From Malacoraja senta (Eukaryota): a DNA stretch of 64,000 nt. A program made the position numbers and the translations under genes. Under the pieces are notes generated by a model. That model was not told the DNA's origin. It did not search any database and was given only the letters and a program-made list of their open reading frames with translations. Below are positions 5,546 through 58,491 of this stretch, piece by piece (position 1 is the first letter of the stretch; every line of letters begins with the position of its first letter). The DNA is taken from positions 11,718,001-11,782,000 of the forward strand of contig CM075988.1 in the NCBI GenBank assembly GCA_038087875.1. Direction: 5' to 3'.

Positions 5546-5550
5546 GCACT

Positions 5551-21628: not shown

Positions 21629-22483
21629 AATTACAATTACAATTTTGTTTATTTGTCTTTTGGACAAATTTGTCGTTTGGACCTCAATGTCGTTTCTGCA
21701 GCCATACATCACAAAACGAAGAAGACCCGAGACACAACACAATTTACACATACATCCATCCCAGCGCTGTGATGGAAGGCAAAAACACTTATCTCTCCAC
21801 TGCACTCCCCCCCCCCCCCGATGTCAGAGTCAAAGTCAAAGCCCCTGGCGGGCGATGGTGATTATCCCGCGGCCATTAAAGCCACGCCGGTTAATGCAGG
21901 GTCGCGCACCGGGTCTTGGTGTTAGAGCCCCGGCGCGCGCTCGCAAAGTCCGGCGGCCATTCCAAGCCGCGCGGGGGGATAAAGCCCCGCTGCAGGTGCT
22001 CTTCAACCCCGCAACTCGGGCGGGAGAAGTCGCCGCTGCGGAAGCCCCGAAAAGAGGTCTCCCACCAGGGGACCCCGCGGGCTTCCGGTGTTGCTGTCCG
22101 CCAGACCCGCGGTTGTAGCCTCCGAATCTCCGTGGGTCGGGTCGCAGCAGCGCTCCACCACAGCTCCACCCGCTCCGGACTCGGCCAGCCCCGCGACGGT
22201 GAGTAGTCCGCAGCTCCGCAACTGGAGCCCCAGGTCGTTCCTGCTGGAGGCCGCTCCACGTTGCCCAGCCCCAACGACAACGGAGACCCGACAAAGAAAA
22301 GGTCGGGTCTCCCGTGCAGGGGAAAGATTTCAAAGTCCCCCCCCCCCACCCCACCCCCACCCCCCCCCCACACACATACCCCGACAAAAATAAATTAAAA
22401 AAACTACATAAAACGAGACAAAAATAATTAAAAAACAGACGGACTGCAGAGGCCGCTGCAAACGAGAGTCGCGCCGCCCACCG
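21629..22483 (-). mobile_element. GC/CpG-rich non-coding retroposon (copy A)
   Basis: Minus-strand order: CGGTGGGCGGCGC start, T-rich tract, G-tract, GC-rich body, hairpin (21755-21776), stem-loop, AATAAA, (TTGTAA)n tail. Confidence 0.75.
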
Positions 22484-23294
22484 ATTATTGAGCCATCAGT
22501 CATAAACTGAGAGAAAATGTGATGTGAGAGGTGAACCAGTGCCTGCATATGACCATGCTTGTCCAATCTACTCATCTGCCCAGCTTCATATTGTTGTGAA
22601 TGCTGGAGGTTTTATTTGAGGCTGTCAAATAACGTTTGACCAGATTGAACTCGATCCAATTTTGCTCTCCAGATTTGCTATCTGTAATGCCAACATGCCC
22701 AGAGAAACCACAGACAGCTGGTTAAGCGGATTGTCCATTCCTGAGAACTACCCAGTGTTGTGAGCAATAACTCTGCCTCAAGTGGCAAATCTTAGGCTAC
22801 AGGGAGAGTTGGGAATCTTCAACGCTGTTCCCGCTGCTAACAAAGACCTTGGAGACATTTAGAAATGGATTCACCAACACAAAACTATTGATAAAAATAA
22901 ATTCTAAATAATCACTTATTCCCACTTAACCTTGTAACTCAAAGTTGGCGACACCATTCAAATGATCAGGATTTCAGTGCCTACCCACAGTGGAAGGTGA
23001 GTTTGAAGTGCATCTGATCCATCTGCTCAGCAGTTTCCTGCTTCACTGCCTGGCTCTGTTGCGATTCCAGGAGCAGACTAGACAGTCCAATGACCTCTGC
23101 TTGTCTCCGAATTCTGAGTTTCAAAACAGATGTGGAGGGGTTGTCATGAGATGAAGATCACATGATAGATAAATGTCTGTTCTTGAAAGAACTGCTGATG
23201 AAAGGGTAGTATGACCAGGTTATATGCTCTGCCACCGGATGGAGAAAATGCTGAAGTGTCAAACACTGCAAAGGAAGACTAAAATTTCTTAGAT

Positions 23295-24113
23295 CAATAC
23301 AATACAATACAATACAATACAATACAATACGGTTTTATTCGTCACATTGCACATAAAGTGCAAGTGAAATGAATTTGCCAGCAGCGGTACAATGATAAAG
23401 AACACACAAAAACACAATAAAAATTTAACACAAACATCCACCACAGCATTCATCACTGTGGTGGAAGGCACAAAATTTGGCCAGTCCTCCTCCATTTCCC
23501 CCCGTGGTCGGGACCTCAACCCTCCGCAGCCACCACTGCCGGCCCGCGGCCTACTTCTACCTGCGGGCGTCCAGATATGCAGACAGGTAAATGTCCAGGT
23601 AAGCCCAGAGTCAGCTCTTCCCCACCGGAGACTGCGGCTTTAAGTTGATGTAGGCCGCAGGCCGGCGGTCGAAGATTTAAAGTCCCCGCCGCGCCGCAGC
23701 CAGAAGCACCGCAGACCGCAGGGCCGGCGGTCGAAGCTCCCCTCCAGGGGTGATGGTAAGCCCACACCGGGCCCGCGGTAGAAGTAGGCCGCGGGCCGGC
23801 AGTGGTGGCTTCTCGTTCTCCCGGGTCCCCCACGAGGAGCTCCGCAGACCGCGACTTCAGGCTGCCGCGGGCCAGCGAAATGGAGCGCTCACCTCTGGCG
23901 AGCCCCGGCGAGGGCTTGCCCGCTCCACACCGAGAGTCCACGCTGCGCCCGCCGCTGAAGCCCCGGGCGCGTCTCCGGGAAAGGCCTCACCGATCCTTGC
24001 TGTTAGGCCACGGGGGAGGCGCCATGGAAAAAGTTGCCTCTCCGTGGAGGAGGCGACCGAAGCGGTTTCCCCCTCACCCTCCCACACCACCCCCACACAC
24101 AAAGAAACATTAA
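23295..24113 (-). mobile_element. GC/CpG-rich non-coding retroposon (copy B, 5'-truncated)
   Basis: Collinear with 57670-58378 in the opposite orientation. The 3' end is a stem-loop, AATAAA and (GTATT)7 at 23296-23330. Confidence 0.8.
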
Positions 24114-24387
24114 CAAAGAGAACAATGGTTTGCAAATGTTGGTTTGTCTGCCCATGAAGGTGCATGAACGTATGAATAAAGAGCAGGAGCTAGCCATTTG
24201 ATTTGTGATATTTCGAAGAAGAATTCCAAAGACCCATGACTCTCTGAGAGAATCAAAATTCCCCTCGTCTTTGTTTTAAATGGGAAACTTTTTTTAAAGT
24301 AGTGACCCTTGATTCTAACTTTTCCCACAACAGGAAACATCCCTTCTACCTTGGCTAAATCCTTCAGGATGCCAACCTTTCTCACAT

Positions 24388-24612
24388 GGGTGGCAAAGTG
24401 ACGCCGCGGTAGGATTGTTGCCTTTCTGCGCTAGAGATCCGGGTTCGATCCTGACTACGGGTACTGTCCGTACAGAGTTTGTACATTCTCCCTGTTACTG
24501 CCTGGGTTTTCTCTGGGTACTCCGGTTTCCTCCCACACTCCAAAGATGTGTAGGTTACTTGGCTTCAGTAAAATTGCAAATTGTCTCTTGTGTATAGTAC
24601 AGTGCTTATGGG
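24388..24612 (+). mobile_element. tRNA-derived SINE (HE1/V-SINE-like), 3'-truncated
   Basis: GGGTGGCAAAGTG head, B-box GGGTTCGATCC at 24441-24451, and CCGGTTTCCTCCCACACTCCAAAGA core. Confidence 0.85.
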
Positions 24613-24659
24613 GTGCCTTGAGAGGCAATGTGTAAGCTAACTTTCTTTAAGTGTGGGAT

Positions 24660-25850
24660 CTCAAGAGAATAAGGTTGGTGAATTACTACCAGGGAACAAA
24701 GAAAAAGGCAGCTCTGCTAATTGTTTTTGCTTCAGTCTTTGCAATGGAGGACACTCAAATATCCTGAAGATAAAGATGGACTAATTAGCAATAACATGGA
24801 AAAAATCCCAGTGAGAAGGGAATATGTATTTTTTTTTAAACTAACAGCAGAAAGCAGGGGGGAAAACTGAGACCAAATTGCTTGCACCCAAGGGTTTTAA
24901 AGGAGGTAGCTGCACCAATATTGCACCATTTGTTGACACTTTTCAAAATATGCTAAATTATGGGAAGGGACCAGAAGATTGGAGGAGAAGTTGTGATTCA
25001 CTTGTTAAGAAAGGGAGGAAGACAGGAGAAATGTAGGCCAATTAGTTTAATCTATTCTTTGCAAGATGCTGGAGTCAATATTCTAAGAGGAAATAATTAA
25101 TCATCGTGGAAAACAGAATATCATCAATCTCGTCAAAATGGTTTAATGAAAGGTAAATCATGTTTACAAATTTTCTCTTCCTTTGAAGATATGTCAGTGT
25201 TGTTGGAGTATTTAGATTTCCAAAGGGAATTTAACAAGGTGCCACATGAGAAGCTGATATATAAATTAAGAGCCCTAGAAAGCGTGTAAGGATACCATAG
25301 AATAACAACTGGCTACCACGTTGAAAGGAGATGGAATAAATGGATCATTTTTAGGCTGGACGTAGTGAAATAGGCCATTGGCATGTTGGCCTATGTTGCA
25401 AAAGAGTTGGAGGTTACAGATTGGGTGGTTTCATTACAGTTGTACTGGCTGTTGGTGAGGCCAGTCCTGGAATAAGATGCATATAGTCATAGATTGACAC
25501 AGTGTGGAAAAAGGCCCTTCAGCCCAACTTGCCCACACCAGCCAACATATCTCAGCTACACTGGTCCCATCTGCCTGCGCTTGGTCCATATAAACTTGCC
25601 CTATCCATGTAAATGTTCTTAGTTCTTATTCTTTAATCTAAAAAAATTAAGTAACTTTGGAGGTTGTCCAAAGGAGATTCACCAGGCTATTTCTTGGGAT
25701 GAGATGGTTATCTTACCAAGAGACACTTAAGAGTTTGGTTCTGTATTCCTTGGAGTTTAGAAGAATGTGAGTGACATTAACCAAGCATGCAAGATCCCAA
25801 GGAGGCCTGACAAGGTGGGCGTTGAGATGTTTTCTTGAATGAGAATCACT
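24660..25850 (+). mobile_element. Old, highly decayed CR1 ORF2 with a nested minus-strand CR1 tail (about 25485-25617)
   Basis: Remnant YLDFQ (TATTTAGATTTCCAAAGG..AACAAGGTGCCACA), GGTTTAATGAAAGGTAAATCATG and GTCCAAAGGAGATTCACCAGG segments. Confidence 0.65.
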
Positions 25851-26239
25851 AATAAGGAGACACAGATACAACAAAAAAATGTTGCTATCAGAGAGTAGTG
25901 AATATCTAGAATGGACAAATGCATGCATGATTCCATTTGTCTGTTTTCTATGTGGTGCAGAGGATAGCCAACTGTGGTGGTGCCAGTGTTTGCCTCTTGC
26001 TCTGAAATTGGTATTGGGAATGGAGAGTCATGACCTGGCTGGCAGCCATTATTTTGCAAATGCTTTGGCTTTTGAAAGATAAGGTTGGCACACACCTTGC
26101 ACATCCTGCGGGCTTCATGCGGGTGCCTGTTGTTCAATCTTGTGGCCTCACTAGGGGCTGGTGAGAACAGCTTCTGGCAGTCACCATCATGATCGATGGA
26201 TGGACACACAAAACTTAGAAAAGGATATGGAATCGGAGA

Positions 26240-26680
26240 TTTAAGAGGATGTTGCCTGGACTGGAGGGCCTCAGCAATGGCTTGAGGTTGGACAAGCTAG
26301 GATTTTATCCTTTGGAGTGCAGGAGAGGTGTAGAAAATCATCAGAGGAATGAATAGTGAATACATGTAGTCTTTTATCTAGTGTAGGGGAGTCAAGAACC
26401 AGAGGATGTTGACTTAAAGTGAGAGGGCAAAGATTTAATAGGAAGTTGGGGGGAACTCAGATGGTGGTGGGTATATGGAACGGTCTGGCAGAAGATGTAG
26501 ATGAGGCAGGTATTATAACCAACATTTAAAATGTATTTGGAGAGGTACATGGATAGGTAACGTTTAGAGGGATATGGGACAAATACTGACAAATAAGACT
26601 GGCTTAGATGGGGCATCTTGGTTGGCATGGACAACTTAGACCAAAGGGAGTGTTTCTATACTATCTGACTCTGTAACTCT
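26240..26680 (+). mobile_element. CR1 LINE 3' fragment
   Basis: AGGATGTTGCCTGGACTGGAGGG...GGTACATGGATAGG...GGGCATCTTGGTTGGCATGGAC matches the CR1 3' end. Confidence 0.75.
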
Positions 26681-27651
26681 AAATAGGAGGTTTGTGACCC
26701 TCTGGATGTAATAGTTTAGCCACTTTTTCCATTAATCTCTCAGTTTGACTTGCACAAGATGCAATCTAAGTTCCAAGCCACTTGCAATTCAAGAGTCACC
26801 AGCCTTATCAGCCAGATATGAGTGTGAAACTCTGCTAAATCTTTCTCAGATGAGTTATTGAGGAGTTCATCTCAGTTTTGCAGTTAACATGGGATCCAAT
26901 TCAATCCATATCATTCAGCACTGGTTTAATTACACTTGTCTTCTGGATATATAGTTTATAGGACTGGCTAGCAGGACTACACATCACTTGGAAGTTGTTG
27001 ACCAGGTAATGATAAAAGCGAGCCATGAAATGGGCCAAGCAGGCCTCTGAGAAATTCTGCATTGGTGTTCTGTAGCCCATTTATCAGCTTTCTTGCATTA
27101 AACAGCATCGGCACGCTATCAGCCATTATTCATTCAGGAGATATATTTAACATTATGAATGCCAGCTATGCAGCTAGAATATGCAATAGTGCAGCTTTTT
27201 TTTTCTTTTCTGAAAAGCTGTCTCTAAAACTGCAAAAATGATTTTTCCAGGCACACATCACTATTTGTCATTTATGTCTCATTAATTTTTATTTTGTTTT
27301 GCTCGCTTAATTCGCATCCATGATAATCTATCGGGTCACCAACTTTAGGATTTGTTTTGTGTTCCGACCTGGTAATATTTGTTGAATTCTTTGCAGCCTT
27401 GTTTTCTGAGCAAGGATTGCCTCGGTGAGGAATGCAGTTCCATGTACTTGGTCTGAGCTAATTGTACAGAAGAAACGCTTGTATGAATGGCATCCCATGC
27501 TGGAAACAGAATTGCTGGAGCTGAAGAGAATGTCAAAGAGAAAGAGTGTGGCTGCAGCCGATGCCAACATGTTTGTTGCAAATGTATACCATTTTGGTTC
27601 CGTGAGTGATGCTTTGCTGGTGAAGGCAATAAATTCAAGGAAATTGAAAAT

Positions 27652-28867: not shown

Positions 28868-29010
28868 AGATGGACAGAAAGTGCTGGAGTAACTCAGCAG
28901 GTCAGGCAGCATCTCTGGAGAGAAAGGATGGGTGACGTTTTGGGTCGGGGCCCTGCTTCAGACTGAAAGTGGAGGGGAGGGAACTGGAGGTAAGAAAAGG
29001 CCAAAACCAA
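28868..29010 (-). mobile_element. Penelope pLTR solo copy with hammerhead remnant
   Basis: The reverse complement of 28931-28964 is AGTCTGAAGCAGGGCCCCGACCCAAAACGTCACC. Confidence 0.75.
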
Positions 29011-33674: not shown

Positions 33675-34075
33675 TTACATGAATTTGGATAATTCGCTGT
33701 TCATACCATTGGGTTGTAGACTGCTCAAGTAGAATATGTAATACTGTTCTTCCAGTTTGCAAGTGGTCTCATTCTGCCCATGGAAGCCAAGGCCAGTATA
33801 GGAATGGGACAAAGAGTTAAAGTGGGTAGCAAACAGGAGCTGCAGCAGGCCTTGGCTGACAAAGGGGCAGTTTTCGGCAGAACCAGTCGCCTTGTCATGA
33901 TTTGGTCTCCCAATGCAGAGGGGCCACATTGGGAGCACAGAGTGCAACAGATAAGCTTGGAAGAGATGCATGTGAAATTCTTGCTCACCTGGAAGGTATT
34001 TTGGGGTCAATTGAAGTGAGAGAGGAGGAGTAACATGTCCGACGGCTGCAGGGACGGGGAGCTGGGAGAAAGGTC
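33675..34075 (-). mobile_element. Penelope-like element GIY-YIG fragment
   Basis: ORF 33675..34079 has THFNSLSHS..QNETTCKLEEQYYIFYLSSLQPNGMN, homologous to ORF 48371..48868. Confidence 0.8.
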
Positions 34076-38176: not shown

Positions 38177-38424
38177 AGGGCCTGTCCCACTTGACGATTT
38201 TTCTCGGCGACTGCCGGCGTCATTGACTGGCGTACCAGGGTTGCCGAAAGATTTTGAACATTTCAAAATCCAGCGTCGACAAAAAAAATGTTGCCACACT
38301 TGAGGAAACACCGCACGGCAATACATCGCACCGCCGCATCACTGTCGCAACTTTTTCGGTGACCTGATACGTCGGTCAATGAAGCCGGCAGTCGCCGAAA
38401 AAATCGCCAAGTGGGACAGACCCT
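38177..38424. mobile_element. PIF/Harbinger-type MITE
   Basis: About 70-bp imperfect TIR beginning AGGGCCTGTCCCACTTG, with TTA TSD at 38174-38176 and 38425-38427. Confidence 0.88.
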
Positions 38425-39315
38425 TTAGGTGTTTGAGAAGCAACGGTGAAGCAGTCAAAATAGTTTGTGAATTGTACGTGAGGTGCCAATTGTTATTCAG
38501 ATGAGCACTTGAGATGCCATTATAACAGGTTGATGGTCGAAGATAAAATACATTTTCTTGACTGGCTTACATGCATTCAGTTGAATGTTCCATTTCTGTG
38601 CCATATATCCAGCCGTTCTGTGACACATACTTGGAGATGGGGTTCACAGCACAATGTGAAGTAAAATGTGCAATTTTGTTTGAACTAATTTAGCGTTGAT
38701 TTTGCTGTGTCAGCCAATTTGCAATTTTTTTTTTTGATTAGCAGATGTGTCTTTTCTGAAAATGTTATGGATGCCTGTTTTGAGTTGATGTTCGAAACAA
38801 TGGATATGTGCAGTGGCTGGGCTGAATATGGGTGGCAATGGGAAAGATGGTTATCCACAGTGCAGTGATTGCAGTTGTTATTTGGAGGGCAAGCGTGAAA
38901 TAAGATGCCTTCTAGATGAGAGAAATCAGGAGGTTCGTGACAGATCAAGTATCCGGTGGAATGACTGCTGCATGTGCAATTGTCCGTGTGCCAGGCCAGT
39001 AAAGTAATTAAAAGGTACAGCACTGGTCAACTATGGGGATTAGTGGGTAAAATGAAAAAGTAAAGCTTCAGGCAGACAAAAGTTTTTTTGAAAATGCTTT
39101 TGCTACGACAGGATGCTGGATTAGTGGGTTCCTGACCAAGGGAATTGCAATGCTGATGAGGAACAATAATATGAGCTAGCTTCCATTTTGTCATAAGAGT
39201 TGTACAGTCCAGAAACAGGACCGTCAACCCACTTTCAAAAGGATAACAGGTTGTATTATTACTTGTATTGGTAGATAGTAAGTGACCATCCAATTTACCA
39301 GGACTTGGTCTGTGA

Positions 39316-41850
39316 ACATAGAAAATAGGTGCAGGAGTAGGCCATTCGGCCCCGAGCCTGCACCGCCATTCAATATGTTCATGGCTGATCATCCAACTCA
39401 GTATCCTGTACCTGCCTTCTCTCTAACTTCCTCTTAAATATAGCCAATGAACTGGCCTCAACTACCTTCTGTGGCAGAGAATTCCACAGATTCACCACTC
39501 TCTGTGTAAAAAATGATTTTCTCATCTCGGTCCTAAAAGACTTCCCCCTTATCCTTAAACTGTGACCCCTTGTTCTGGACTTCCCCAACACCGGGAATAA
39601 TCTTCCTGCATCTAGCCTGTCCAACCCCTTAAGAATTTTGTAAGTTTTTATAAGATCCCCCCTCAATCTTCTAAATTCTAGCGAGTACAAGCCAAGTCTA
39701 TCCAGTCTTTCTTCATATGAAAGTCATGCCATCCCAGGAATCAGTCTGGTGAACCTTCTCTGTACTCCCTCTATGGCAAGAATGTATTTCCTCAGATTAG
39801 GAGACCAAAACTGTACGCAATACTCCAGGTGTGGTCTCACCAAGATCCTGTACAACTGCAGTAGAACCTCCCTGCTCTTATACTCAAATCCTTTTGCTAT
39901 GAATGCTAACATACCATTCGCTTTCTTCACGGCCTGCTGCACCTGCATGCCTACTTTCAATGATTGATGTACCATGACAACCAGGTCTCGTTGCATCACC
40001 CCTTTTCCTAATCGGCCACCATTCAGATAATAGTCTACTTTCCTGTTTTTGCCACCAAAGTGGATAACCTCACATTTATCCACATTATACTGCATCTGCC
40101 ATGCATTTGCCCACTCACCCAACCTATCCAAGTCACCTTGCAGCCTCCTAGCATCCTCCTCACAGCTAACACTGCCCCCCAGCTTCGTGTCATCCGCAAA
40201 CTTGCATTCAATTCCCTCATCCAGGTCATTAATATATATTGTAAATGGCTGGGGTCCCAGCACTGAGCCTTGCAGTACCCCACTAGTCACTGCCTGCCAT
40301 TCTGAAAAGGACCCGTTTACTCCTACTCTTTGCTTCCTGTCTGCCAGCCAGTTCTCTATCCACATCAATACTGAACCCCCAATACCATGTGCTTTAAGTT
40401 TGCATACTAATCTCTTATGTGGGACCGTGTCGAAAGCCTTCTGAAAGTCCAGATATAACACATCCACTGGTTCTCCCTTATCCACTCTACTAGTTACATC
40501 CTTGAAAAATTCTATAAGATTCGTCAGACATGATTTACCTTTCCATGCTGACTTTGTCCAATAAATTCACCACTTTCCAAATGTGCTGCTATCTCATCTT
40601 TAATAACTGACTCTAGCATTTCCCCACTACCGATGTTAGACTAACTGGTCTGTAATTCCCCGTTTTCTCTCTCCCTCCCTTTTTAAAAAGTGGGGTTACA
40701 TTAGCTACCCTCCAATCCTCAGGAACTACTCCAGAATCTAAAGAGTTCTGAAAAATTATCACTAATGCATCCACTATTTCTGGGGCCACTTCCTTAAGTA
40801 CTCTGGGATTCAACTTATCTGGCCATGGGGATTTATCGGCCTTTAATCCATTCAATTTACCTAACACCACTTCCCGACTAACCTGGATTTCAATCAGTTC
40901 CTCCATCTCATTGGACCCCCGGTCCCCTGCTATTTCCGGCAGATTATTTATGTCTTCCTTAGTGAAGACAGAACGAAAGTAGTTATTCAATTGGTCTGCC
41001 ATGTCCTTGATCCCCATGATCAATTAGCCTGTTTCTGACTGCAAGGGACCTACATTGGTTTTAATTAATCTTTTTCTCTTCACATATCTATAAAAACTTT
41101 TGCAGTCAGTTTTTATGTTCCCTGCCAGTTTTCTTTCATAATCTATTTTCCCTTTCCTAATTAAGCCCTTTGTCCTCCTCTGCTGGACTCTGAATTTCTC
41201 CCAGTCCCCTGGTAGGCTGCTTTTTCTGGCTAATTTGAAATCTTCATCTTTGGTTTTGATACTATCCCTGATTTCCCTTGTTATCCACGGATGCACTACC
41301 TTCCCTGATTTATTCTTTTGCCAAACTGGGATGAACAATTGTTGTAGTTCATCCATGCAGTCTTTAAATGCCTTCCATTGCATATCCACCGTCAATCCTT
41401 TAAGAATCAATTGCCAGTCTATCTTGGCCAATTCACGTTTCATACCTTCAAAGTTGCCTTTCTTTAAGTTCAGGACCCTTGTTTCTGAATTAACAATGTC
41501 ACTCTCCATCCTAATGAAGAACAACCATATTATGGTCACTCTTGCTCAAGGGGCCACGCACAACAAGACTGCTAACTAACCCTTCCTCATTACTCAATAT
41601 CCAGTCTAGAATAGCCTGCTCTGTCGTTAGTTCCTCTACATGTTGGTTTAGAAAACTATCCCACATACATTCCAAGATATCCTCTTCCTCAGCACCCCTG
41701 CCAATTTGATTCACCCAATCTATATGTAGATTGAAGTCACCCATTATAACTGTTTTACCTTTGTTGCACGCATTTCTAATTTCCTGTTTGATGCCATCCC
41801 CAACTCCACTACTACTGATAGGTGGCCTGTACACAACTCCCACTAGCATT
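39316..41850 (-). mobile_element. CR1 LINE (HER1-like), 5'-truncated ORF2: APE C-terminus and reverse transcriptase
   Basis: APE motifs VYRPP, IMGDFN, ILDWIL, SDHN (41511..41849). RT motifs GNYRPVSLTS, YLDFQKAFD, QGSVLGP, KFADD, RPHLEYCVQFW (40613..41023, 39724..40485). 3'UTR and CATAGAAA tail at 39316. Stops and frameshifts are present. Confidence 0.97.
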
Positions 41851-46268: not shown

Positions 46269-47710
46269 ATGGCATAATTAATGAATCAGCAGAATTAGTT
46301 ATTATACTTCCCACCGCATCATTTCCCAGCCCCGCACAGCCCGTTTTTACGTTCTCCCCAAAATCCACAAACACAACTGCCCTGGCAGACCCATTGTTTC
46401 TGCCTGCTCCTGTCCCACGGAAATGATTTCCACGTACCTTGACCATCCTATCCCCCCCCCCCCCCCCCCCCGGTCCAATCTCTCTCAACCTATGTCAAAG
46501 GTACCTCATGTGCCCTTTGTCTCTTTAATGACTTCCGCTTTCCGAGTCCCCACTCCCTCATCTTTACTATGGACGTTCTGTCACTCTACACCTCCATCCC
46601 CCACCAGGAAGGCCTTAAAGCCCTCTGTTTCTTCCTCGACTGCAGAACATCCAATTTCCCTCTATTAACACTCTACTATGCCTAGCGGAGCTGGTCCTCG
46701 CCAGCAACAACTTCTCTTTTGACTCCTCCCAGTTCCTCTAAGTCCAAGGCATAGCTATGGGGACCAGCATATGCCTGCCTCTTTGTAGGATAGGCTGAAC
46801 AATCCATGTTCCAGGCATACACTGGCCCTATCCCCGAACTCTAACTCTGTTACATTGATGACTGCATCGATGCTACCTCCTGCACCCGTGCAGAACTCAT
46901 GGACTTCATCAACTTCACCACCAGTTTTCATCCTGCACTCAAATTTACTTGGACCATCTCTGATACCTCCCTCCTCTTTCTTGATCTCCATATCCATCAC
47001 AAGAAATAGATTAGTTACTGACGTCTATTACAAATCCACTGATTCCCACAACTATCTTGACTACACATCTTCCCACCCTACTTCCTGCAAAGACTCTATC
47101 CCCTACTCTCAATTCCTCCGTCTACGCTGCATCAGCGCCCAAATGAGGTGTTCCACACTAGAACATCCGAGATGTCCTCATTCTTTAGGAAACGTGTGTT
47201 CCCTTTCCCATCATAGATGAGACCCTCACTCATGTCTCCCCGGTACCCCACAGCTCCGCCCTTGCTCCCCATCCCCTAGTCACAACAGAGACAGAGTCCC
47301 CCTAGTCCTTACCTTCCACCCCATCAGCCGTCGCATACAACACATAATCCTCCAAAATTTCTGCCACCTCCAACGTGATCCCACCACTAGCCACATTTTC
47401 CCATCTCCACCCCTTTCCTCCTTCCGCAGAGACAGTTCCCTCCGCAACTCCCTGGTTCACTCATCCCTTCCCACCCAAACCACCTTCTCCCAAGGCACCT
47501 TCCCCTGCAACCGCAGAAGATGTAACACCTGTCGCTATACCTCCTCTCTCGACTCTGTCCAGGGACACTGACAGTCCTTTCAGATTAGGCAGAGGTTCAC
47601 TTGCAACTCCTCCGACCTCATCTAATGTATCCGCTGTTCAAGATGTGGACTCTTATACATCGGCGAGACCAAACCCAGACTGGGCGATCGTTTCTGGGTG
47701 AAATAACCAT

Positions 47711-48352
47711 CGGGTGGCGTCAGCAATGGCTGCCTCACCAACAGTCTGTCTGTATCTTTCTTTTTTTTAAGTATGTGTTAAATGTATGTGTTTAGTGTTC
47801 TTTAGCTTGTTTTTATGTGGAGGGTGGAGGAGGGGTTTGGGGGAAACTTTTTCAAATTTCTTCCCTCGACGAAGATGCGATTTTTTTCCATTTCGTATCA
47901 CCGTCCGCACTGCCGCCTAACATTGAGGAGTTGGCGGCCTTTGCTGGAGACCAACTTTGAGAGCTCCACCGCGGGAGCCTGCGGGTCTTTAACATCGTGG
48001 AGCTCGCGGTCTCTTGTCAGAGACCGACTTTGGGAACTCCAAGCCGTGGGAGCTTCGACTGCCCCGACACGGGGGCTTCTACTGCCCCGACGCGGGATTT
48101 TTGATCGGCCCCACGTGGGAGCTTCGATCACCCCGACGGATGGTTCGACTGCCCCGACCGTGGGAGAAAAATGAGGGAGCATTAGACCTCATGATCTTCC
48201 ATCACATTGAGGAAAGTGGGGAATCCGCTGTGTTGGATGTTTATGTTAACTTTTATGCTTGTGTGTGTTCTTGCTTTTTTTAGTATGGCCGTATGGTAAT
48301 TTGCATATCACTGTTCCTTATTTGGTACCCGTGACAATAAAAGACCTTTGAA
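47711..48352 (+). mobile_element. GC/CpG-rich non-coding retroposon (copy C) inserted in the PLE endonuclease
   Basis: It splits the GDRF|EHL coding sequence. CGGGTGGCGTCAGC start, T tract, G tract, hairpin at 48198-48237, stem-loop and AATAAA. Confidence 0.75.
48048..48165 (+). repeat. Tandem array of five units of about 21-24 bp (GGGAGCTTCGACTGCCCCGAC)
   Basis: Units start at about 48048, 48071, 48094, 48117 and 48138, with no unique spacers. Confidence 0.8.
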
Positions 48353-49412: not shown

Positions 49413-50847
49413 AAGTTACTGCCTCCATATGCGCACACTACCCTGAATTCAACATTCAAAGCATGAAGATGGTTCAATAAGAAGAAAGTTATGATGGAAG
49501 ATTAATAATACTGCAGCCATCAATTTATGAAAATAAGATGAACAACAGTGCAGATATGATGGTCATAAAATGAGGGGGGGGGGGGGGTGGGGTGGTGGTC
49601 TGCTTCTTGTAAGTTATTTACCAGAAGGCCTAATATGAAGTTTTTCACAAAATGGATGAAGAGATAGTTTGAGGGCATGGATTTTGCTTGACTAGGGACA
49701 GATGCAGAAATGAAATGGATCAAAGCTCAAGTTTCTTTTTGAGTCTCAATGTAACACTGAAAACAACAGGCCAAATAACCACTTACTGTAATGTGACACG
49801 TCACCTCTTTCTCAAAACAATCAGACAGCAAGCTCTGCATTAAAAATAAATGGTTTCATATTTAGATCAATGCAAACTGCAGTGTCAGACAAGAATAGAA
49901 CATGGAATTATACTTAGCCAAGCAAGATTGTGTCTCTGGTATTATCCATTTACACATTTATTCCTGTTTCCATCTACATATATTAGAGATTTCTCTTGGC
50001 AATAGCACCTGACAAATAGTTGTCTGTTTTATGACTTTTTTCCTCTATAGTAGTTACAAGGTAATGCCAACGACTTCACAATAAATGGCTGACTGCCTCC
50101 ATTGAAATAGCTGACAAACACTTAAATTTCATTTTAAAGTTCTCTGGGAAATGCTACCCACTTTCTCTGCTTTCTGTATGTATTTGTCACTATCCTCTTT
50201 TGACCCATGTTCTCTGAGCCTCCACCGCCATTTTTTATATCCCAGTCCCTTTTGTCCCTCAGCAATAAAATAATCTGTCAAATTCTTCTTTCACCAACCC
50301 CTTTCTCTTTCTCAAACACTTTTCTTGATAACCCCTTTGTCTCACTACCCTCTTCTGCTTGCTACCATCTTCAGAATCTGTTCTGAACATGCTAATCCCA
50401 CAGAAACCTCTTCAATACCCTCTTTCTGATGACCAACCCCTCTAAGCTCTCTCTCACTCAACACTCTCCTCATCTTGTTACCAAACTGTATATTTCTCCA
50501 CCTAGCCATTGCATATGGCTCTGTTCTCCCTTCTTGTGCTGAACCATTCATTCCTCCAGTTCCTATATTCTAATTTACATTCATCACTTTCCTCCCATTC
50601 TCAAATCTCTAAATTAATTTTGACTCTCTCACCTCTTCACAAAATTGAATCTAAGTACAATGTCCCTTTGCTTTCTTAATCTTTTCCCCACTCAAAATCC
50701 TCACCACTGTATCACAATCATGCCTCAATTCACCATATGTGCACAGCCTTCAACAGCCTTTATCAACAGTCCCAACTTAAATCCACCTTTCAAACTTCGT
50801 AAACCCAATTCCTTCCTTGGGTTTTGTAATACCAAATTACTAAATTG

Positions 50848-51635: not shown

Positions 51636-54171
51636 TGATGAAGTATATATCTTCTTGCCCATAAGCACAGCATTTTCTTTGCCTGTATTTTCTCTTTCAA
51701 TCCTTCATATAAGTCTCTTATTTTTGGAAATGTCATTTTGCACATGAATCTCACAAATCCCTTTCTTCCCACTTTATCTCCATCACTGTATTTTTCCCCT
51801 CTCCTTCCTTCATTATCTCTATCTAACTATCTCATCCCTTTTATCTAAGCCTCTTCACCAGACTCTCCTCAGATCTTCTGTGTCTTTCTCTGTCAACCTC
51901 CGTCGCATGCCATGTTGCCACAACCCCCTCAGCGCTCTCAGCCCCTCTCCTCTGTCTCAGGCAGTGAAGATGCAAATTAGTTCCAGGGAAGTAATTCTGT
52001 TCCCCAGGCAACCTCCCATTCATTGTTAATTAATTCTCCCACTGGCCCAGAAGTCCAGCATAAATAACGCACTCAAATGTTCTTAAATTGTTCGGCAAGA
52101 AAAGCATTGTTGAAGCGAGAAAGTAATAAGGAGAGAAAGTAATGGTACGAAATATAATCCAATTCATGAGAATAAATAATTTGTTTTCGGAGTGCTGATA
52201 AAAAATGTGGAAATTCTAAAAGTGGCATTTCTTCCAACAGCATACTCACACCCATACTAAAAAAAAACATCAATTTGTATTCAAGACAAATTTTCATTCA
52301 GCAAAAACATACCAATTAGAATAAAAACGAATTTGTTTCATTTGGATGGCCTTGCATGTTTACACATGACTGATGTTAAATACTGGGTCAACTCTGCAGA
52401 AGCCAGTAAGGTTTGCAAACCCACTGGTCATTTTGACATGCAGTTGCCAGACTCAAATGTTTAATAAAAATAAGTTCATTATTTGGCTTTGAATTAAATT
52501 GAGTAAAATTCTGTCAGTATGATGGATGTATTTGCATAGTTTTCATAGCTTGCTGAAAGCACTAAATGGCAGAAAACTTATCAAACCAAACAGGATATGT
52601 AATAGAATAAAATTGAAATATTTCCAAGACAAACTTCCCATTTTGCTGCAATAGAGGATATTAAAACTGGAGTGAGAATCCAGTTGCCAGGATTACTAAA
52701 ACAACAGTTCCAAACTGAAATTCTATGTTTAATACTTTGTGTATTTGCAGTTCAATTATTTGGAAAATTGGAAATTAGTTTTTTTTCATCATGTACAGAT
52801 TTTTTTGGATTGTTTTGAAACTTCTCTCGGCTTGGTATTCTTACATGGTTTCACCTGTTTCCACAGTCTGAACATGGTAAACATTTGGTCATGCTCTGTA
52901 GTATTTGAACAATAAGTAAGCATAACATCCTTTTAATCTTTGTATTTCTTCATTTCACTTCTCACAAATTTTTCTTTCTCTCCCCCCCCCCCTCCCCATA
53001 ATTACTTTCTCACACCCTGCACTTAAATTCTACATTGCCCTACAAATTTAGATGGCCATCTTTGTCAGCATGGAAGTGTTGGGCCGAATGGCCTGTGTCT
53101 GTGATGTATGACTGATGGAAGCAATCTTTACTTCTAATCTTTAAAGTAATTGGTGTAAGATTTTTCTGCTGCCCAAAATGTTTTGTAAATAAATTAGCTT
53201 TTTAAAAGTCCAGCCATTTTTCTTCACTGTTCATTGAACGATTTTAGGAAAGATTTCTTGGCGTCTAGATGTATGATCTTTATGTCTCTCGTGCACAAAG
53301 CACTTGACCAGGGTACATCATTACAAATTATTTATAACACAAAAGTACCTGTGATGAGGGGTTAGACGAGTTTAAAAGAGAGATTTGATTGATGAATTCT
53401 CATCTTTATGTGATCTCTAAAATGTATAAATCAAGCACCTCTCAAATAGTCAAAAGCAGTTGTGAAAAGTTGTCAGATACTTAATGTGTCTCAGTAGCTG
53501 GTAACTACTCCATTGATTATAATGTTTGGAAAGGCAAGCAGCCTTGAGGGAAGGCTGAGAACATGTACTTCAGTTCTCTCCTGTCACACCTCCATACCCT
53601 GAATCCTTCAATCATTTCGGAAAGTCTGGAAAAGACTCCGTTAATGCATCTTTAAAAAACGCAGATTTCATCCCAACAATATTTTGTGCTGGAAACTTTA
53701 GTTGACAAATTGATTCTTATAATGCCCTCAAGTGTTCTAAGTACACTCCAAAATATCATTAGACTTGTGAGTAACTAAAGTGGAACGGGTTGTTTCTTGC
53801 CCAAATCAATGCCTGAGGATTTTACTCCTGTTTTGATATGCTAAATGGCTGCAAATTTTTTCCCTGATGCCAAATTGAGGACCACCAATAAAAATATGTA
53901 AATGGAATATCCTTACTTTCTGAAACCCAACTTGCTTTGATCTCTTCATGGCAACCACTCTGGTGTAATGGATCCGAGGAAAACCAGCAGCGTGGCATTT
54001 GGAGGTTTGAGGAAGGTAGAAGGTGGAGCTGGGGAGGGAGATAGAAGAAGGAAAGATCTGTGCAAAAGAGGTTTAGCGGTGGAATGATGGAAGGCCCTTA
54101 TCCTATCCCATGACAGAATCGGTATCATGACTGAACTGCTATTATTACCTGGCTTCACTACTCCAATAACA

Positions 54172-54565
54172 TCAAACATAAAACATAGAACAGTACAGCA
54201 CAGGAACGGGCTCTTTGGCTCACAATGTTTGTGCTGAACACAATGTCAAGTTAAACTAATTTCATCTGCCTGCACATGATCTGTATCCATCTATTCTCTA
54301 CACATCCATGTGCCTATCTCAAAGCCTCTTAAAAAACAGTTAAGTATCTCTCTCCACTACCACCCCAGGCAATGTGTTCCAGGCCCTCAACATACTCTGT
54401 GTTTAAAAAAAAAACTTGCCCCCCACATCTCTATTAAACTTTCCCCCCTCTCATTTTATGGTTATGCCCTCTGGTATTAGACATTTCCACCCTGGGGGAA
54501 ATAGAAGGTTCTGACTGTCTACCCTATTTTTGCCCCTCATAATTTTATATTCTTCTATCAAATCT
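54172..54565 (-). mobile_element. CR1 LINE 3' fragment
   Basis: AACATAAAACATAGAACAGTACAGCACAGGAAC tail followed by CR1 UTR/ORF-end sequence. Confidence 0.8.
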
Positions 54566-54656
54566 CTGACCTCCATTACTCAGTATTAAAATCATTGTGA
54601 CCAGGTGCTAGAAAATGAATGGTAAGGATGAGTGCAGTGCTTGTTTATGTCACAAG

Positions 54657-54959
54657 GGACTTTGGAGAAACAGCGCAGAAATAGGCCCTTCAGCCCACCG
54701 AGTCCGTGCCAACATGCGATCACCCCGTACACTAGCACTATCCTACCTAGTAGGGCCAATTTACAATTTTTACCAAAGCCAACTAACCTGCAAAGCTATA
54801 CATCTTTGGAGGGTGGAAAGAAACCAGGACAGCCGGAAAAAATCCACGCGGTCATATGGAGAACGTACAAACTCCATACAGATGGCACTCATAGTCAGGA
54901 TCGAACCCGGGTCTCTGGTGTTGTAAGACAGCAACTACTGCTGTGCCACCTTGCCACCC
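54657..54959 (-). mobile_element. tRNA-derived SINE (HE1/V-SINE-like)
   Basis: GGGTGGCAAGGTGGCACAGC head and GGGTTCGATCC B-box. Collinear with the other copies. Confidence 0.87.
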
Positions 54960-55365
54960 ACAAGGAGGGAACTGATCTTTGCTGTACCATGGATTTCATC
55001 AAGTCCTGTCCAGGGCTCTGGAAACGATTGTGACCTGAAGATATCAGCAGAAAAATGCTTTGATCTGTACTGAGGGTGCAGCAATGAGACAGTCAATGCA
55101 TTAAACTGACAGGCACAGATTTATGAAATATAAAACAAGTGTTTGGACCAAGTCCCATTAATTCATGCATGATCCACAACCTTCGGCACAATACACTTGT
55201 TGAAATGTGAACTGATGCTGAAGGATGCAACTGTTTTAATCCATTTTCTGTTGATGAGTAATCAATGGGCACCATGCATGATGATGACATTGTACCTGCT
55301 CAAAGTATGATGGGTAAACTCCATTGTTGGTTGGGTTCATTGTGACGGAGTGCCTGGTCTAATGC

Positions 55366-55937
55366 ATAGAAAATAAAAGAGTACAGCACAAGAACTGGCC
55401 CCTTTGACCCATAATGTCTGTGCCAAACATGATGCCAAGAATATCTAGTATTAGATAGTATACTGCATAACCACCCATTCCCTGCATATCTATATGCTTA
55501 TATAAAAACCTCTTAAATGCCACAATTCTGCCTCAACCACCAACACTGGCAGTGCGTTCCAATCACTTGCCATCCTCTGTGTATGAAAGTAAAACCTGCC
55601 CCGCATGTTCCTTTAAGCTTTGCCCCTCTCATCTTAAACCTTTGCCTTCTAGTATTTGATTTTTCCATCCTGGGACTGCCTACCCTATCTGTGCCTCTGA
55701 TAATTTCATACACATCTCTTCGCAACCTCCAGAGATGACAATCCAAGTTTGTCCAAACTCTCCCTGCAGCTAATCGCCCCAAATGCAGGCAACGTTCTGG
55801 AAAACCACCTCTACACCCTTGCCAAAGTCTCCACATCCTCCTTGTAATTGGGCAGCCAGAACTGCATGCAATATTCCAAATGTGGCCTAACTAATGTCCC
55901 ATAACGCTGTGTCATGGCAAGCTGCCTCTTGTACTCT
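55366..55937 (-). mobile_element. CR1 LINE 3' fragment
   Basis: ORF 55513..55836 has EKSNTRRQRFKMRGAKLKG. The CR1 3' end is at 55366-55410. Confidence 0.8.
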
Positions 55938-56099
55938 CCCCGGAGCCCATGCCCATCCCGCTGAGCCACCTTCAACTTCAGAGCCAAACAAAAAACACAG
56001 AGTGCTGGAGGAACTCAGCGGGCAAGGCGGCTGCTGAGTTTCTCCGGCATTTTTGTCTACCGCAAAACGTCAATGATTCCGGGAATGCCGAGGCGACAG

Positions 56100-56192
56100 G
56101 GTGAGAGAGAGGGAGTGAGAGAGCTAGAGAGAGACGAGATGGGGAGAGATAGAGCGTGAGAGAGAGAGGGAGGGAGAGAGAGAAAGACAGAG
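56100..56192. repeat. Imperfect (GA)n microsatellite
   Basis: Directly visible GAGAGA-rich tract. Confidence 0.85.
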
Positions 56193-56335
56193 TCACAACG
56201 TAGGTTGGTAGGTGAATGACTAACCTGCACACCAGAATGGCCTTCGGTCAGAGCAAGGCAAAGTCTTTTTCTACCCAGCCTATGTCTGGAATGGTTTGAG
56301 AGGAAGCCATTGGAAAGAGGACTGTCCTGCTTGGG

Positions 56336-56545
56336 GTTTGGTTTAGTTTATTGTCACGTGTACCGAGATACAGTGAAAAGCTTTTTGTTGTGTGCTAATC
56401 AGTCAGCAGAGAGACAATACATGATTACCATTGACCCATTCACAGTGTATGGATAGAAGCGTGGAGCAATTATAATGTGTGATTGCAGATCCTCTTCTGG
56501 GATCAGCGTGCAGAGAGTCGCCTGTCATGGATGGTGCCATCTTTG
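56336..56545 (-). mobile_element. Short (about 210 bp) bipartite non-autonomous retroposon with Rex-type tail
   Basis: The minus strand begins CAAAGATGGCACC and ends TTTCACTGTATCTCGGTACACGTGACAATAAACTAAACCAAAC. Confidence 0.6.
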
Positions 56546-57190
56546 CCACACCTTGCACTTTGCATTCTCTCCTGGAGCTCAGAGCAATCCAGTGGATTGT
56601 ATGCCTGCCTTTCCATTCTACATTTGAAGACGTGGAACTGAAATCCAGTATGCCCGTTTGATGTTGGAGGTGGGGGCGGAAATCCCATGGCATTAAACAG
56701 ATTAGAGATTTGAACCAGGCTCAATCAACCTCCACCTTGAAAAACAAAACCCAATCTATTTGTCATTAGTTGTTTGTGGCAACTTCTCAGGAACAAATTG
56801 GCTGCCACTTTGCTTACATTAGAAGTGATTGCATTTCATGCGTTTCATCAGTTATACTTCATTGGGCAAAGTAAAACGTGCTGGTGCACTATATACAGTA
56901 CATGCAAATACTTGCCTTCATCAGGCTATGCTGGATTTTATCCATCATACACAATTTCATTCGAAAAGAAGGCTGTGTGAGAAGTAGCATTCAAGAACCA
57001 TTGTTTTGAAACTCCAGTTGATTCTCCAATACTTTTTTATATAAGCTTACATTTCCAAATGTAGCTGACAAAAGTGACACCATTAATTTTAGACTTTACA
57101 TAGATACGTAAAGTACTTTAGACTTTACATAGATACGGTGCAGGAGTAGGCCATTCGGCCCTTCGAGCCAGCACCACCATTCAATGTGAT

Positions 57191-57570
57191 CATAGAATCA
57201 TAGAATCATAGAAAGTAGGTGCGAGAGCAGACCACCAGGTCCATCGAGCCCGCACCGCCATTCGCTCATGGCTGAACACCAAACAAACAAACACCCCCAC
57301 CCACAAACAGTAGACACAAGACACAGAACACAAGACACTACCCTCCCCTTTATAGCGCTATCACCCCTCTCCACCCCAAGAACCGAGTGATCTCCTGGGG
57401 GAGGCAAAAAACCGGATAAAAACCCAGGTCCAATTCAGGAAAAAAATCCGGGAAATTCCTCTCCGACCCCAATCCAGGCGATCGACACTTGTCCAGGAGA
57501 TCACTCAGGTCTTACTATACTAACCTTACCTAGGTCCATATCCCTGCCCTCTCCCCGTAGCCCCTTATCC
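57191..57570 (-). mobile_element. 3' fragment of a second CR1-like family
   Basis: (CATAGAAT)n tail and AGGTGCGAGAG..CCATCGAGCCCGCACCGCCATTC, a CR1-type terminus with a different UTR. Confidence 0.65.
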
Positions 57571-57577
57571 GTTGTCT

Positions 57578-58491
57578 GTAGGGGGCGCTGCTCTGGCAGC
57601 AGCCATGTCAGCAGTGCGTCAGTTTTTTCAACTTTATTTTTTATTTTTAGTATGTTTTAAAATGTGTAATTAATGTTTCTTTGTATGTCTTGTGTGGGGG
57701 GTGGTGTGGGGGGGTAAGGGGGAAACCGCTTCGGTCGCCTCCTCCATGGAGAGGCGACTTTTCCAGGTCGCCTCCCCCGTGGCCTAACATCAAGGATCGG
57801 CGCGGCCTTTCCCGGAGACGTGACCGGGCTTCAGCGGCGGGCGCAGCGTGGACTCTCGGCGTGGAGCGGGTGAACCCTCGCTGGGGCTCGCTGGAGGGGA
57901 GCGCTCCGTTTCGCTGGCCCGGGGCAGCCGGCAGCCTGAAGTCGCAGCCTGAAGCCGCGGTCTGCAAAGCTCCAGCTGGTGCGGCGTCTACAGCCCAGGA
58001 TCCCTCTTGGGGGACCCGGGGGAAGAAGAAGAAGCCATCATTGCCGGCCCGCGGCCAACTTCTACCGTGGGGCCGGCATGGACTTACCATCACCCCTGGA
58101 GGGGAGCTTCGACCGCCGGCCCTGCAGTCTACGGTGCTTCTGGCTGCGGCAGGGAACCTTAAATCTTGACCGCCGGCCTGCGGCCCACAACAATCTAAAG
58201 CCGCGGTCTCCGGTGAGGAAGAGCCGATCCTGGACTGACTTGGACTCTGGTCCTGTCCACGGGGGGGAAATGGAGGAGGACTGGCCAAATTTTTGTGCCT
58301 TCCACCACAGTGATGAATGCTGTGGTGGATGTTTGTGTTACTTTTTGTGTGTTCTTTTTATTGTATCGCTGCTGACAACCCAATCCATTGCCGGGTCGCT
58401 GCTCATGCGGTCGACCGGTCGGTGCAGATTAAATGTATTGTTTGTTTAAATTGCCCCTCGGGGACAAATAAAGTGCTTGGTAATTGGTAAT
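57578..58491 (+). mobile_element. GC/CpG-rich non-coding retroposon (copy D, apparently full length)
   Basis: GTAGGGGGCGCTGC start, T tract, G tract, a body homologous to 23375-24113, hairpin at 58301-58329, CCCCTCGGGG stem-loop, AATAAA and (TTGGTAA)2. Confidence 0.8.

Follow-up and report, generated by a model that had tools for sequence, protein, structure and literature searches.

A diversified, abundant and recently active family of gene-less retroposons with LINE-like tails in a skate-like genome

Introduction

To our knowledge, nearly all LINE-parasitic repeats described in non-mammalian vertebrates are short Pol III SINEs. The hominoid composite retroposons SVA and LAVA are ORF-less, non-tRNA elements of about 1 kb or more, presumed to be Pol II transcripts with AATAAA, in which conserved ends flank a variable GC/CpG-rich tandem-repeat body; a LINE mobilises them in trans, and some copies are 5'-truncated. 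All of this holds for four elements, A to D, found in a 64,000-nucleotide stretch of DNA that we refer to as the window, mobilisation in trans being predicted in their case. Their logic is SVA-like. Whereas SVA has a poly(A) end, depends on the relaxed L1 machinery and makes target-site duplications of 5-20 bp, A to D have tails of the stringent type, made of a hairpin and a microsatellite, and their target-site duplications are absent or short. They contain no Alu-like or SINE-R part and have no sequence relation to SVA.

At the 3' end, the comparison is with UnaSINE1/UnaL2 and HE1/HER1, where, as in A to D, a stem-loop is followed by short tandem repeats; these are recognised stringently by the reverse transcriptase of the partner LINE (PMC3747384). 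The (TTGTAA)n and (GTATT)n tails found here are akin to the (TGTAA)n of UnaL2 (PMC3747384). Unlike stringent CR1-group SINEs, A to D lack both a Pol III promoter and a head of tRNA, 5S or 7SL origin, contain T-runs that would stop Pol III, are three to five times longer and have a CpG-rich body unlike any SINE core. Rex1/Babar LINEs, which are most abundant in rays (PMC13343379), share with A to D a 3'UTR layout that is conserved and leads into an oligonucleotide repeat whose length varies (PMC6274825, PMC13343379); unlike them, A to D carry no reverse transcriptase or endonuclease, and Rex1-like sequence in the window is limited to the last ~30 nt of C. HAL1 and RIME/SIDER also have LINE-type ends without enzyme genes, but these align along their whole length to a parent LINE, and no LINE carrying the 5' block, body or 3' module of A to D was seen in the window.

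Results and Discussion

An earlier sequence-only reading had proposed four elements of one architecture, and we located all four within 0-14 nt of the positions it had assigned. The bounds are as follows.

21631..22483, minus strand: element A, full length, 853 bp, bounded by an empty site in a sister species
23287..24116, minus strand: element B, 5'-truncated, beginning at about nt 93 of D, from an empty site and BLAST to D
47697..48349, plus strand: element C, bounded by the reading frame of its host
57578..58491, plus strand: element D, full length

The elements are 0.65-0.9 kb long and GC-rich (GC 0.49-0.60, against 0.42 for the window). Their common plan opens with a GC box, passes by way of a T-rich tract and a G-tract to a first hairpin, continues through a CpG-rich, minisatellite-like body, and closes with a second hairpin and GGATGTTTGTGTT; after these come a short hairpin in the tail and GACAATAAA, followed in A, B and D, but not in C, by a microsatellite. 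The individual parts are these.

22374..22483, minus strand: A head, 5' end CGGTGGGCGGCG (GC box), then T-rich tract
22337..22369, minus strand: A G-tract, which fits a G-quadruplex motif
22278..22316, minus strand: A hairpin 1, GGAGACCCGAC / GTCGGGTCTCC, -22 kcal/mol
21746..21779, minus strand: A hairpin 2 and GGATGTATGTGT
21631..21745, minus strand: A tail, two copies of a 17-nt tandem unit, GACAAATAAA, then (TTGTAA)n
24008..24046, minus strand: B hairpin 1, with two mismatches beside the loop
23528..23810, minus strand: B body, with a perfect 34-nt inverted repeat (23528-23561 / 23777-23810)
23428..23468, minus strand: B hairpin 2, CCACCACAG / CTGTGGTGG, and GGATGTTTGTGT
23295..23379, minus strand: B tail, GGCAAATTC, hairpin TCACTTGCAC / GTGCAATGTGA, GACGAATAAAA, then (GTATT)7
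47867..47906, plus strand: C hairpin 1, GAAGATGCGA / TCGTATCACC
48045..48158, plus strand: C body, five copies of a ~23-nt unit, CGTGGGAGCTTCGACTGCCCCGAC, minisatellite-like
48195..48246, plus strand: C hairpin 2 region and GGATGTTTATGT
48296..48349, plus strand: C tail, ...GGTACCCGTGACAATAAAAGACCTTT, without a microsatellite
57745..57782, plus strand: D hairpin 1, GGAGAGGCGAC / GTCGCCTCCCC
58298..58338, plus strand: D hairpin 2 and GGATGTTTGTGT
58375..58491, plus strand: D compound tail, an old B-like remnant GTGCAGATTAAATGTATTGTTTG, then a second tail AAATTGCCCCTCGGGGACAAATAAA and (TTGGTAA)n

Alignment upheld the proposed architecture and the proposed relationships, with B and D close (79-85% identity) and A and C divergent. 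Neither A nor C gives a BLAST alignment to B or D, and yet similarity extends over the head, the block formed by the G-tract and the first hairpin, and the 3' module, with local-alignment z values of 3-15 against dinucleotide shuffles (for the head, 7.2 between A and D and 3.0 between A and C). The GC-rich bodies cannot be aligned between subfamilies (z 0.8 between A and D). As in SVA, a VNTR-type GC-rich middle lies between unrelated conserved modules. Besides the 23-nt unit of C, B has three copies of a 15-nt unit, two of them exact and one at 87%, and short repeats of a related kind occur in D; the inverted repeat of B is absent from D. Contigs from sequencing runs jump variable lengths within the bodies. 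Searches of the 64-kb window with nhmmer and with a covariance model of hairpin 1 returned no fifth copy.

Hairpin 1 shows signs of being conserved as structure. Across the alignment, pairing covers 82.7% of cells, compared with 32-50% once the partner is slid, and two pairs have changed on both sides (GC/CG/UA and GC/CG/GU). This covariation, drawn from four sequences in three lineages, was matched by 7 of 500 shuffles.

The lack of a credible ORF and of a tRNA A/B-box head, both asserted from the letters alone, held up. There is no conserved ORF in A to D: homologous stretches of B and D shift frame, the ORFs present are composition artefacts rich in G, R, A and P, and a protein search with the longest found no match. 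No reverse transcriptase or endonuclease occurs in the elements, RVT_1 being confined to neighbouring LINE pieces, and we therefore rejected an autonomous Rex1/Babar LINE as an identity for them. ARAGORN found 0 tRNA genes, Rfam gave no family for A to D at the gathering threshold or at E<=1, and no A or B box was found at up to two mismatches, save for a G-tract artefact in C. Each copy has 4-9 runs of at least four T, the first at nt 46-51 in full-length copies. A classical Pol III SINE derived from tRNA, 5S or 7SL was rejected on these grounds: no small-RNA head, no boxes and early T-runs.

That the elements are mobile, previously argued from C and D lying within other transposable elements, is confirmed by several lines of evidence. 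The unique flanks of A and B differ by ~5% in a sister species that has empty sites for both. At A, a 349-nt sister-species contig of depth 30.6 places 250 letters on 22484-22756, and a second piece of equal depth at ~21531-21630 accounts for the other 99; the empty site is thus deduced by arithmetic on contig pieces, the joint itself not being listed. At B, a sister-species contig joins 23286 to 24117 with four letters between. Because contigs bridge both empty sites, the insertions are young: A and B landed after the split from the sister species. B also confirms the proposed 5' truncation, since its BLAST match begins only at about position 93 of D. C splits a decayed Penelope-like ORF, interrupting the host frame ...YIGETKPRLGDRF | EHLRSARVNQPDLPVAGHFNSPS, while a paralogue at 33700-34000 (minus strand) is uninterrupted; its 5' junction has 14 extra nt (47697-47710), and the core opens with CGGGTGGCG at 47711. 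D lies between CR1-type LINE ends and adjoins the 3' end of one. The start of D may instead be 57567, should the CCCCTT found at 57561-57566 and again at 58492-58497 represent a target-site duplication.

The family thus displays hallmarks of retroposition, namely a fixed 3' end, variable 5' truncation, and filled and empty sites. That possible 6-bp duplication, the size of 0.65-0.9 kb and an internal AATAAA are what would be expected if the elements were solo LTRs or derivatives of DNA transposons. We regard such an origin as extremely improbable: A to D lack both TG..CA ends and terminal inverted repeats, B has lost its 5' end and kept its 3' end, the tails are microsatellites, and the empty site at A has no target-site duplication.

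The family is extremely abundant and recently active. In two matching runs, consisting of contigs only and guessed to be RNA, 19,073 contigs from the element's own species and 30,122 from a relative were placed on the 3 kb around A and B, and 3,792 of the own-species contigs are at least 99% alike. In both species, contig coverage of A and B is thousands of times that of the flanks. Summed word depth, which is not a copy number, reaches 6e4-1.3e6 over the elements and ~30 on the flanks. Coverage is deepest over the hairpin 2 stretch of B, and depth over the bodies equals depth over the 3' ends. 31-mers of the stretch also occur in runs from at least seven other organisms.

An ORF-less sequence with a defined 5' end and AATAAA near its 3' end might also arise as a retropseudogene, and A to D could in principle be chance products of LINE enzymes acting on the transcripts of a host non-coding RNA gene, or of a few such genes. 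Tens of thousands of matching contigs, many at least 99% alike, make this very unlikely, as do several deeply diverged subfamilies, ends made of microsatellite instead of poly(A), and the exchange of tails between subfamilies.

All four tails combine a short hairpin with a GACAATAAA-type motif, GAC(A/G)A(A)TAAA, and in three of them a repeat of 5-7 nt follows. The tails are subfamily-specific, with (TTGTAA)n, (GTATT)n, (TTGGTAA)n or no repeat and no poly(A), so that one conserved core is coupled to several unrelated tails. B and D part sharply just past GCTGCTG, and D has two tails in series. Judged by sequence, the tails have the architecture of stringent-type CR1-group LINE ends. Candidate LINEs in the window include Rex1 pieces at 5198-5558 and 6712-8700 (minus strand).

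6712..7631, minus strand: Rex1-type LINE fragment, reverse transcriptase ORF and 3'UTR ending GGCAAATTCCTTG...GGCTAATAAA and short repeats
5198..5558, minus strand: second Rex1-type LINE end, C-terminus LPSGRRYRS..NSYFPTAIRLLN, 3'UTR ending GGGACACATGACAATAAA

The first fragment contains Pfam RVT_1 and is 50% identical to the P0012 reverse transcriptase and C-terminus; the motif FVDFSSTFNT of a Rex1-type LINE lies at 7592-7861 (minus strand). Neither BLAST nor nhmmer aligned any tail significantly with the 3' end of a LINE in the window. The last ~30 nt of C resemble Rex1-type ends at 56345-56475 (minus strand; z 8.1) and 5198-5392 (minus strand; z 5.3), with an nhmmer E of 3.1 and no BLAST match, and the tail of B shares with the Rex1 3'UTR at 6712-6887 a 12-nt match, GGCAAATTCATT, below significance. 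No partner LINE for the A, B or D tails was found in the window. The (TTGTAA)n tail of A resembles the L2-type (TGTAA)n of UnaL2, and an L2-type partner would fit it as well. The suggestion that Rex1/Babar LINEs drive the family may be right: the tails have the form of LINE ends, but in the window a resemblance to Rex1 (z 5-8) is confined to the end of C. A Rex1-type LINE is a plausible candidate partner, and the data support A to D being non-autonomous, LINE-dependent retroposons.

GC-rich, repetitive 5'UTR promoters are known in other LINEs, for example the monomers of mouse L1. The elements might be an internally deleted autonomous LINE, most likely Rex1, in which loss of the ORF joined the 5'UTR to the 3'UTR; in that case the conserved 5' block is the promoter of the LINE, and A to D are no independent lineage, as in HAL1 and SIDER/RIME. 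Rex1 lacks ORF1 (PMC13343379), so a single deletion would suffice, and the last ~100 nt of the elements follow the layout of the window's Rex1 3'UTRs (T-rich, ..GCTGC.GCAA.., hairpin, AATAAA). We nevertheless consider this origin unlikely. Neither hairpin 2 nor the GGATGT module is present in the window's two Rex1 3'UTRs, and the 5' block and body are unmatched elsewhere in 64 kb that hold several LINE pieces. A 3'UTR common to truncated LINEs should exceed the body in depth, which it does not, and one conserved core is joined to several unrelated tails.

In our preferred reading, which we hold to be probable, A to D belong to a superfamily of non-tRNA, ORF-less retroposons that is very abundant and recently active in a skate-like genome, modular and mobilised by LINEs; the alignment, ORF, tRNA and Rfam results all agree with the diversified family originally proposed. 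Each element comprises a conserved 5' block of ~250 nt (GC/GT-box start, T-rich tract, G-tract and covarying hairpin), a fast-changing CpG-rich body of degenerate ~23-nt units, a conserved 3' part (a 9-10 bp hairpin and GGATGTTTGTGTT) and a subfamily-specific tail shaped like a stringent-type CR1-group LINE end. The 5' block would contain an internal promoter from which RNA polymerase II transcribes the element. A LINE reverse transcriptase, most likely of Rex1 type, would act in trans, binding the hairpin and repeat of the tail and inserting a copy of the RNA by target-primed reverse transcription. Early stops would yield 5' truncation, as in B, and integration would leave a short target-site duplication or none. 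New partners may be acquired by tail swapping or, as in D, by placing a second tail after the first.

More tentatively, and with the odds somewhat against it, the family may be a cartilaginous-fish counterpart of SVA: an active Pol II superfamily built on structured RNA, with its own promoter and hairpin core, that hijacks successive LINE lineages by swapping or stacking tails and scatters tens of thousands of CpG-island-like, G-quadruplex-prone, kilobase-sized units in skates. If so, a gene-less, partner-switching element of apparent Pol II type and kilobase size that rides stringent-type LINEs and is still inserting would widen the range of LINE parasitism. With CpG- and G-rich copies in the tens of thousands, methylation maps and the calling of promoters and CpG islands in skates and rays would be affected, as would genome assembly and the masking of repeats. 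A and B, both species-specific insertions, show that copies can be used as presence/absence markers between closely related skates.

CpG retention had been put forward as setting the family apart from neighbouring repeats. The observed/expected ratio is indeed high in A to D (0.80-0.96, against 0.39 for the window), but this is not unique to them: ratios of ~1 occur in MITE-like palindromes too (7760-8290 and 19610-19790). Youth explains the retention as well as protection does, and it suffices, since A and B are younger than the ~5% species split.

Four copies with a shared, modular plan

The four CpG-rich, ORF-less retroposon copies have the following bounds:

21631-22483, minus strand: element A
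23287-24116, minus strand: element B
47697-48349, plus strand: element C
57578-58491, plus strand: element D

They stand out from the window overall (GC 42%, CpG observed/expected 0.39) with a GC content of 49-60% and a CpG observed/expected ratio of 0.80-0.96. B and D are 79-85% identical across most of their length, and B starts at about nt 93 of D, indicating that B is 5'-truncated. A and C did not reach BLAST significance against B or D. A single plan is nonetheless visible in a multiple alignment of all four: a GC-box head, T-rich tract, G-tract, hairpin 1, CpG-rich body, hairpin 2 with a GGATGT module, and tail. We tested this plan segment by segment, scoring local alignments against dinucleotide-preserving shuffles. 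The head scored z 7.2 for A-D, 4.8 for C-D and 3.0 for A-C; the G-tract with hairpin 1 scored 15 for C-D, 8.1 for A-C and 2.7 for A-D; and the 3' module scored 8-11 for all three pairs. The GC-rich bodies showed no likeness between subfamilies (A-D z 0.8, C-D z 2.4). By these scores the family is modular: its ends are conserved and its middle is quick to change. The sequence-only reading had proposed one architecture for the four, with B and D close, A and C divergent and B lacking its start, and all of this holds.

A common 5' start, marked by a GC/GT box, is seen in all three full-length copies: CGGTGGGCGG in A, CGGGTGGCG in C and ..GGGGGCG in D. The body of C is minisatellite-like, with five copies of a unit of about 23 nt, CGTGGGAGCTTCGACTGCCCCGAC; the bodies of B and D hold related CTTCGACCGCCGGCC units, and contigs derived from other copies leave out stretches of varying length within the bodies. 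B's body also carries a perfect 34-nt inverted repeat (23528-23561 and 23777-23810, arms 215 nt apart) that is partial in D; it has the look of a recent inverted duplication within B's body and might fold into a long hairpin. Neither a four-copy profile nor a covariance model of hairpin 1 found a fifth copy in the window. Runs of 19-24 G or C at 46452-46471, 49574-49598 and 62070-62093, each inside another repeat, were rejected as family members.

Directly behind the G-tract lies hairpin 1, whose arms are GGAGACCCGAC/GTCGGGTCTCC (A), GGAGAGGCGAC/GTCGCCTCCCC (D) and GAAGATGCGA/TCGTATCACC (C). In its alignment 82.7% of cells are paired; sliding the partner by 1-3 columns lowers this to 32-50%. 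Of the 11 core pairs, two are altered on both sides (GC/CG/UA and GC/CG/GU), a degree of covariation attained in 7 of 500 shuffles; coming from four sequences of three lineages, it is suggestive of a conserved structure and is not proof. Conservation is also strong in hairpin 2 (CCACCACAG/CTGTGGTGG), whose one compensatory change (CG to UA) does not rise above shuffles.

In all four tails GAC(A/G)A(A)TAAA comes after a short hairpin. The repeats in the tails differ:

Tail repeats of the four elements
A: (TTGTAA)n
B: (GTATT)7
D: (TTGGTAA)n
C: none

B and D belong to one type as far as ...CGCTGCTG, past which they show no relation; behind a B-like old end (GTGCAGATTAAATGTATTGTTTG), D has gained a second tail. 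Judged by this break and by D's stacked tails, tail exchange is real. In A, a 17-nt unit is tandemly duplicated at 21651-21684, immediately ahead of the AATAAA and microsatellite; on the element strand it reads (GTCCAAA[C/A]GACAAAT)x2.

Insertion sites and abundance

We compared the 3-kb stretch that contains A and B with contigs of a sister species, whose unique flanks differ by about 5%. One sister contig (record 27) shows the site of B empty: only four letters separate its 22909-23286 part from its 24117-24398 part. For A, 250 letters of a 349-nt contig (record 25, depth 30.6) were placed on 22484-22756, and a second piece of equal depth, lying on about 21531-21630 with one base omitted, corresponds to the missing 99 letters of record 25; the empty site for A is thus deduced from length arithmetic, with no listed joint. 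The empty sites indicate that both insertions are younger than the species split. No target-site duplication was found at A. The two elements, though of different subfamilies, lie in the same orientation about 800 bp apart and are both absent from the sister species; their proximity may reflect a local hot spot or coincidence.

C splits a decayed ORF between ...CGLLYIGETKPRLGDRF and EHLRSARVNQPDLPVAGHFNSPS. From the motif LLYIGET..RLGDRF/EHLRS we take this ORF to belong to a Penelope-like element, in its endonuclease region; a GIY-YIG domain was not confirmed there by Pfam. An uninterrupted paralogue at 33.7-34.0 kb defines the inserted block as 47697-48349, including 14 nt of extra sequence at the 5' junction. 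D is flanked at 57188-57577 by a 390-bp CR1-type end on the minus strand, which bears a (ATTCTATG)n tail, and on its other side by the 3' part of another LINE, with RT at 59204-59569 on the minus strand. CCCCTT on either side of D may be a 6-bp target-site duplication. The empty sites and the ORF split by C bear out the proposal that the copies are mobile; as for C and D sitting inside other transposable elements, C does interrupt a putative Penelope-like ORF, and D lies between LINE ends. The CR1-type ends around D (57120-57577 and 58497-59600) are stacked on the minus strand with D at the junction, the 390-bp truncated copy lying about 70 nt from the 3' end of a LINE of the same kind; they have paralogues at 1407-1744 and 39316-39995.

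Words from this 3-kb stretch are shared with runs from at least seven further organisms. Contigs matching this stretch at 88% likeness or more number 19,073 in the species' own run, where 3,792 are at least 99% alike, and 30,122 in that of the sister species. Summed word depth is 6e4-1.3e6 on the elements and about 30 on the unique flanks and spacer; such depth is not copy number, and the contrast amounts to three to four orders of magnitude. A metagenome scan with the 3'-module pattern hit one bacterial gene, a coincidence with no bearing on the family.

The elements are neither coding nor Pol III SINEs

Long ORFs occur on either strand of the elements, rich in G, R, A and P. The frame changes between B and D within homologous stretches, and a protein search with D's longest (antisense) ORF returned no match, in keeping with the earlier view that no ORF is credible. 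ARAGORN found no tRNA genes, A and B boxes are absent from the elements, and Rfam, searched both at gathering thresholds and with E<=1, yielded nothing but a single sub-threshold miRNA-like match, upholding the claim that a tRNA-type head is lacking. That match, to mir-2067 in the body of B, scored 28.9 bits where gathering requires 70 and was taken as chance. All copies contain multiple stretches of at least four T, beginning at nt 46-51 in the full-length copies, and these would stop RNA polymerase III. The elements are neither coding nor Pol III SINEs. An autonomous Pol II transcript, if made, would be expected to start at CGGTGGGCGG and end after GACAATAAA on the element strand. The case for transcription is weak, as the short matching contigs in two runs are only guessed to be RNA.

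A CR1-group LINE as the likely partner

Two LINE ends in the window served for comparison:

6712-7631, minus strand: Rex1-type end with an RT ORF (6888-7631), a 3'UTR (6712-6887) and an FVDFSSTFNT motif further upstream
5198-5558, minus strand: Rex1-type end with a 3'UTR down to 5198 and the C-terminus LPSGRRYRS..NSYFPTAIRLLN

The Rex1 name of both is our assignment, presumed from motifs typical of Rex1 and not from a tree. The sequence-only reading had named Rex1/Babar as the probable driver. The 3'UTR layout of both ends matches the last ~100 nt of the elements, and the end of C (GGTACCCGTGACAATAAA) is similar to the LINE ends at 56345-56475 (minus strand; z 8.1) and 5198-5392 (minus strand; z 5.3). 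Against this, BLAST and nhmmer searches of the window with element heads and tails returned no significant LINE 3' end or 5' region; the best nhmmer value between C's end and the Rex1-type ends was E 3.1, and B has 12 nt and no more in common with the Rex1 UTR. A's repeat resembles (TGTAA)n, from the L2 element UnaL2 (PMC3747384), just as closely. A stringent-type CR1-group partner is therefore well supported in kind. Rex1, the most abundant CR1-group LINE in rays (PMC13343379), is the best candidate for what is so far a putative pairing.

Alternatively, the elements could be deletion derivatives of a LINE, its 5'UTR joined to its 3'UTR. We consider this improbable: hairpin 2 and the GGATGT module are missing from both Rex1 3'UTRs in the window, contig depth over the bodies equals that over the 3' ends, and a single conserved core is paired with several unrelated tails. 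Literature searches found no published description of the family. As a LINE-dependent composite retroposon it would be SVA-like in logic, by analogy; unlike SVA, it ends not in poly(A) but in hairpin-and-microsatellite tails of the stringent type.

At 20928-20965 (plus strand) lies a severely truncated Rex1-type end (..ACATACTTGGCTAATAAA) whose last 18 nt are identical to 6712-6730 (minus strand) and whose repeat, (ATTGTG)n, is unlike that of the LINE there, indicating that one LINE 3' end can bear different microsatellites.

CpG retention

The elements do keep their CpGs, as first noticed, but this does not set them apart, since MITE-like palindromes in the window also have a CpG observed/expected ratio of about 1. 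The youth of A and B, together with the many near-identical contigs, explains the retention without protection from methylation, although such protection may also play a part. One of the CpG-rich palindromes (7760-8290; observed/expected about 1.0) has inserted into the RT region of a Rex1-type LINE; it has long inverted arms (...GGACGAGAAGCCGAAG... and ...CTTCGGCTTCTCGTCC...) and contains 32-nt repeats. Two copies of a small CpG-rich MITE, with terminal inverted repeats GGGCCTGTCCCACTTGGGCG... and ...CGCCCAAGTGGGGCAGGCCC, lie at 19610-19790 and 38200-38430.
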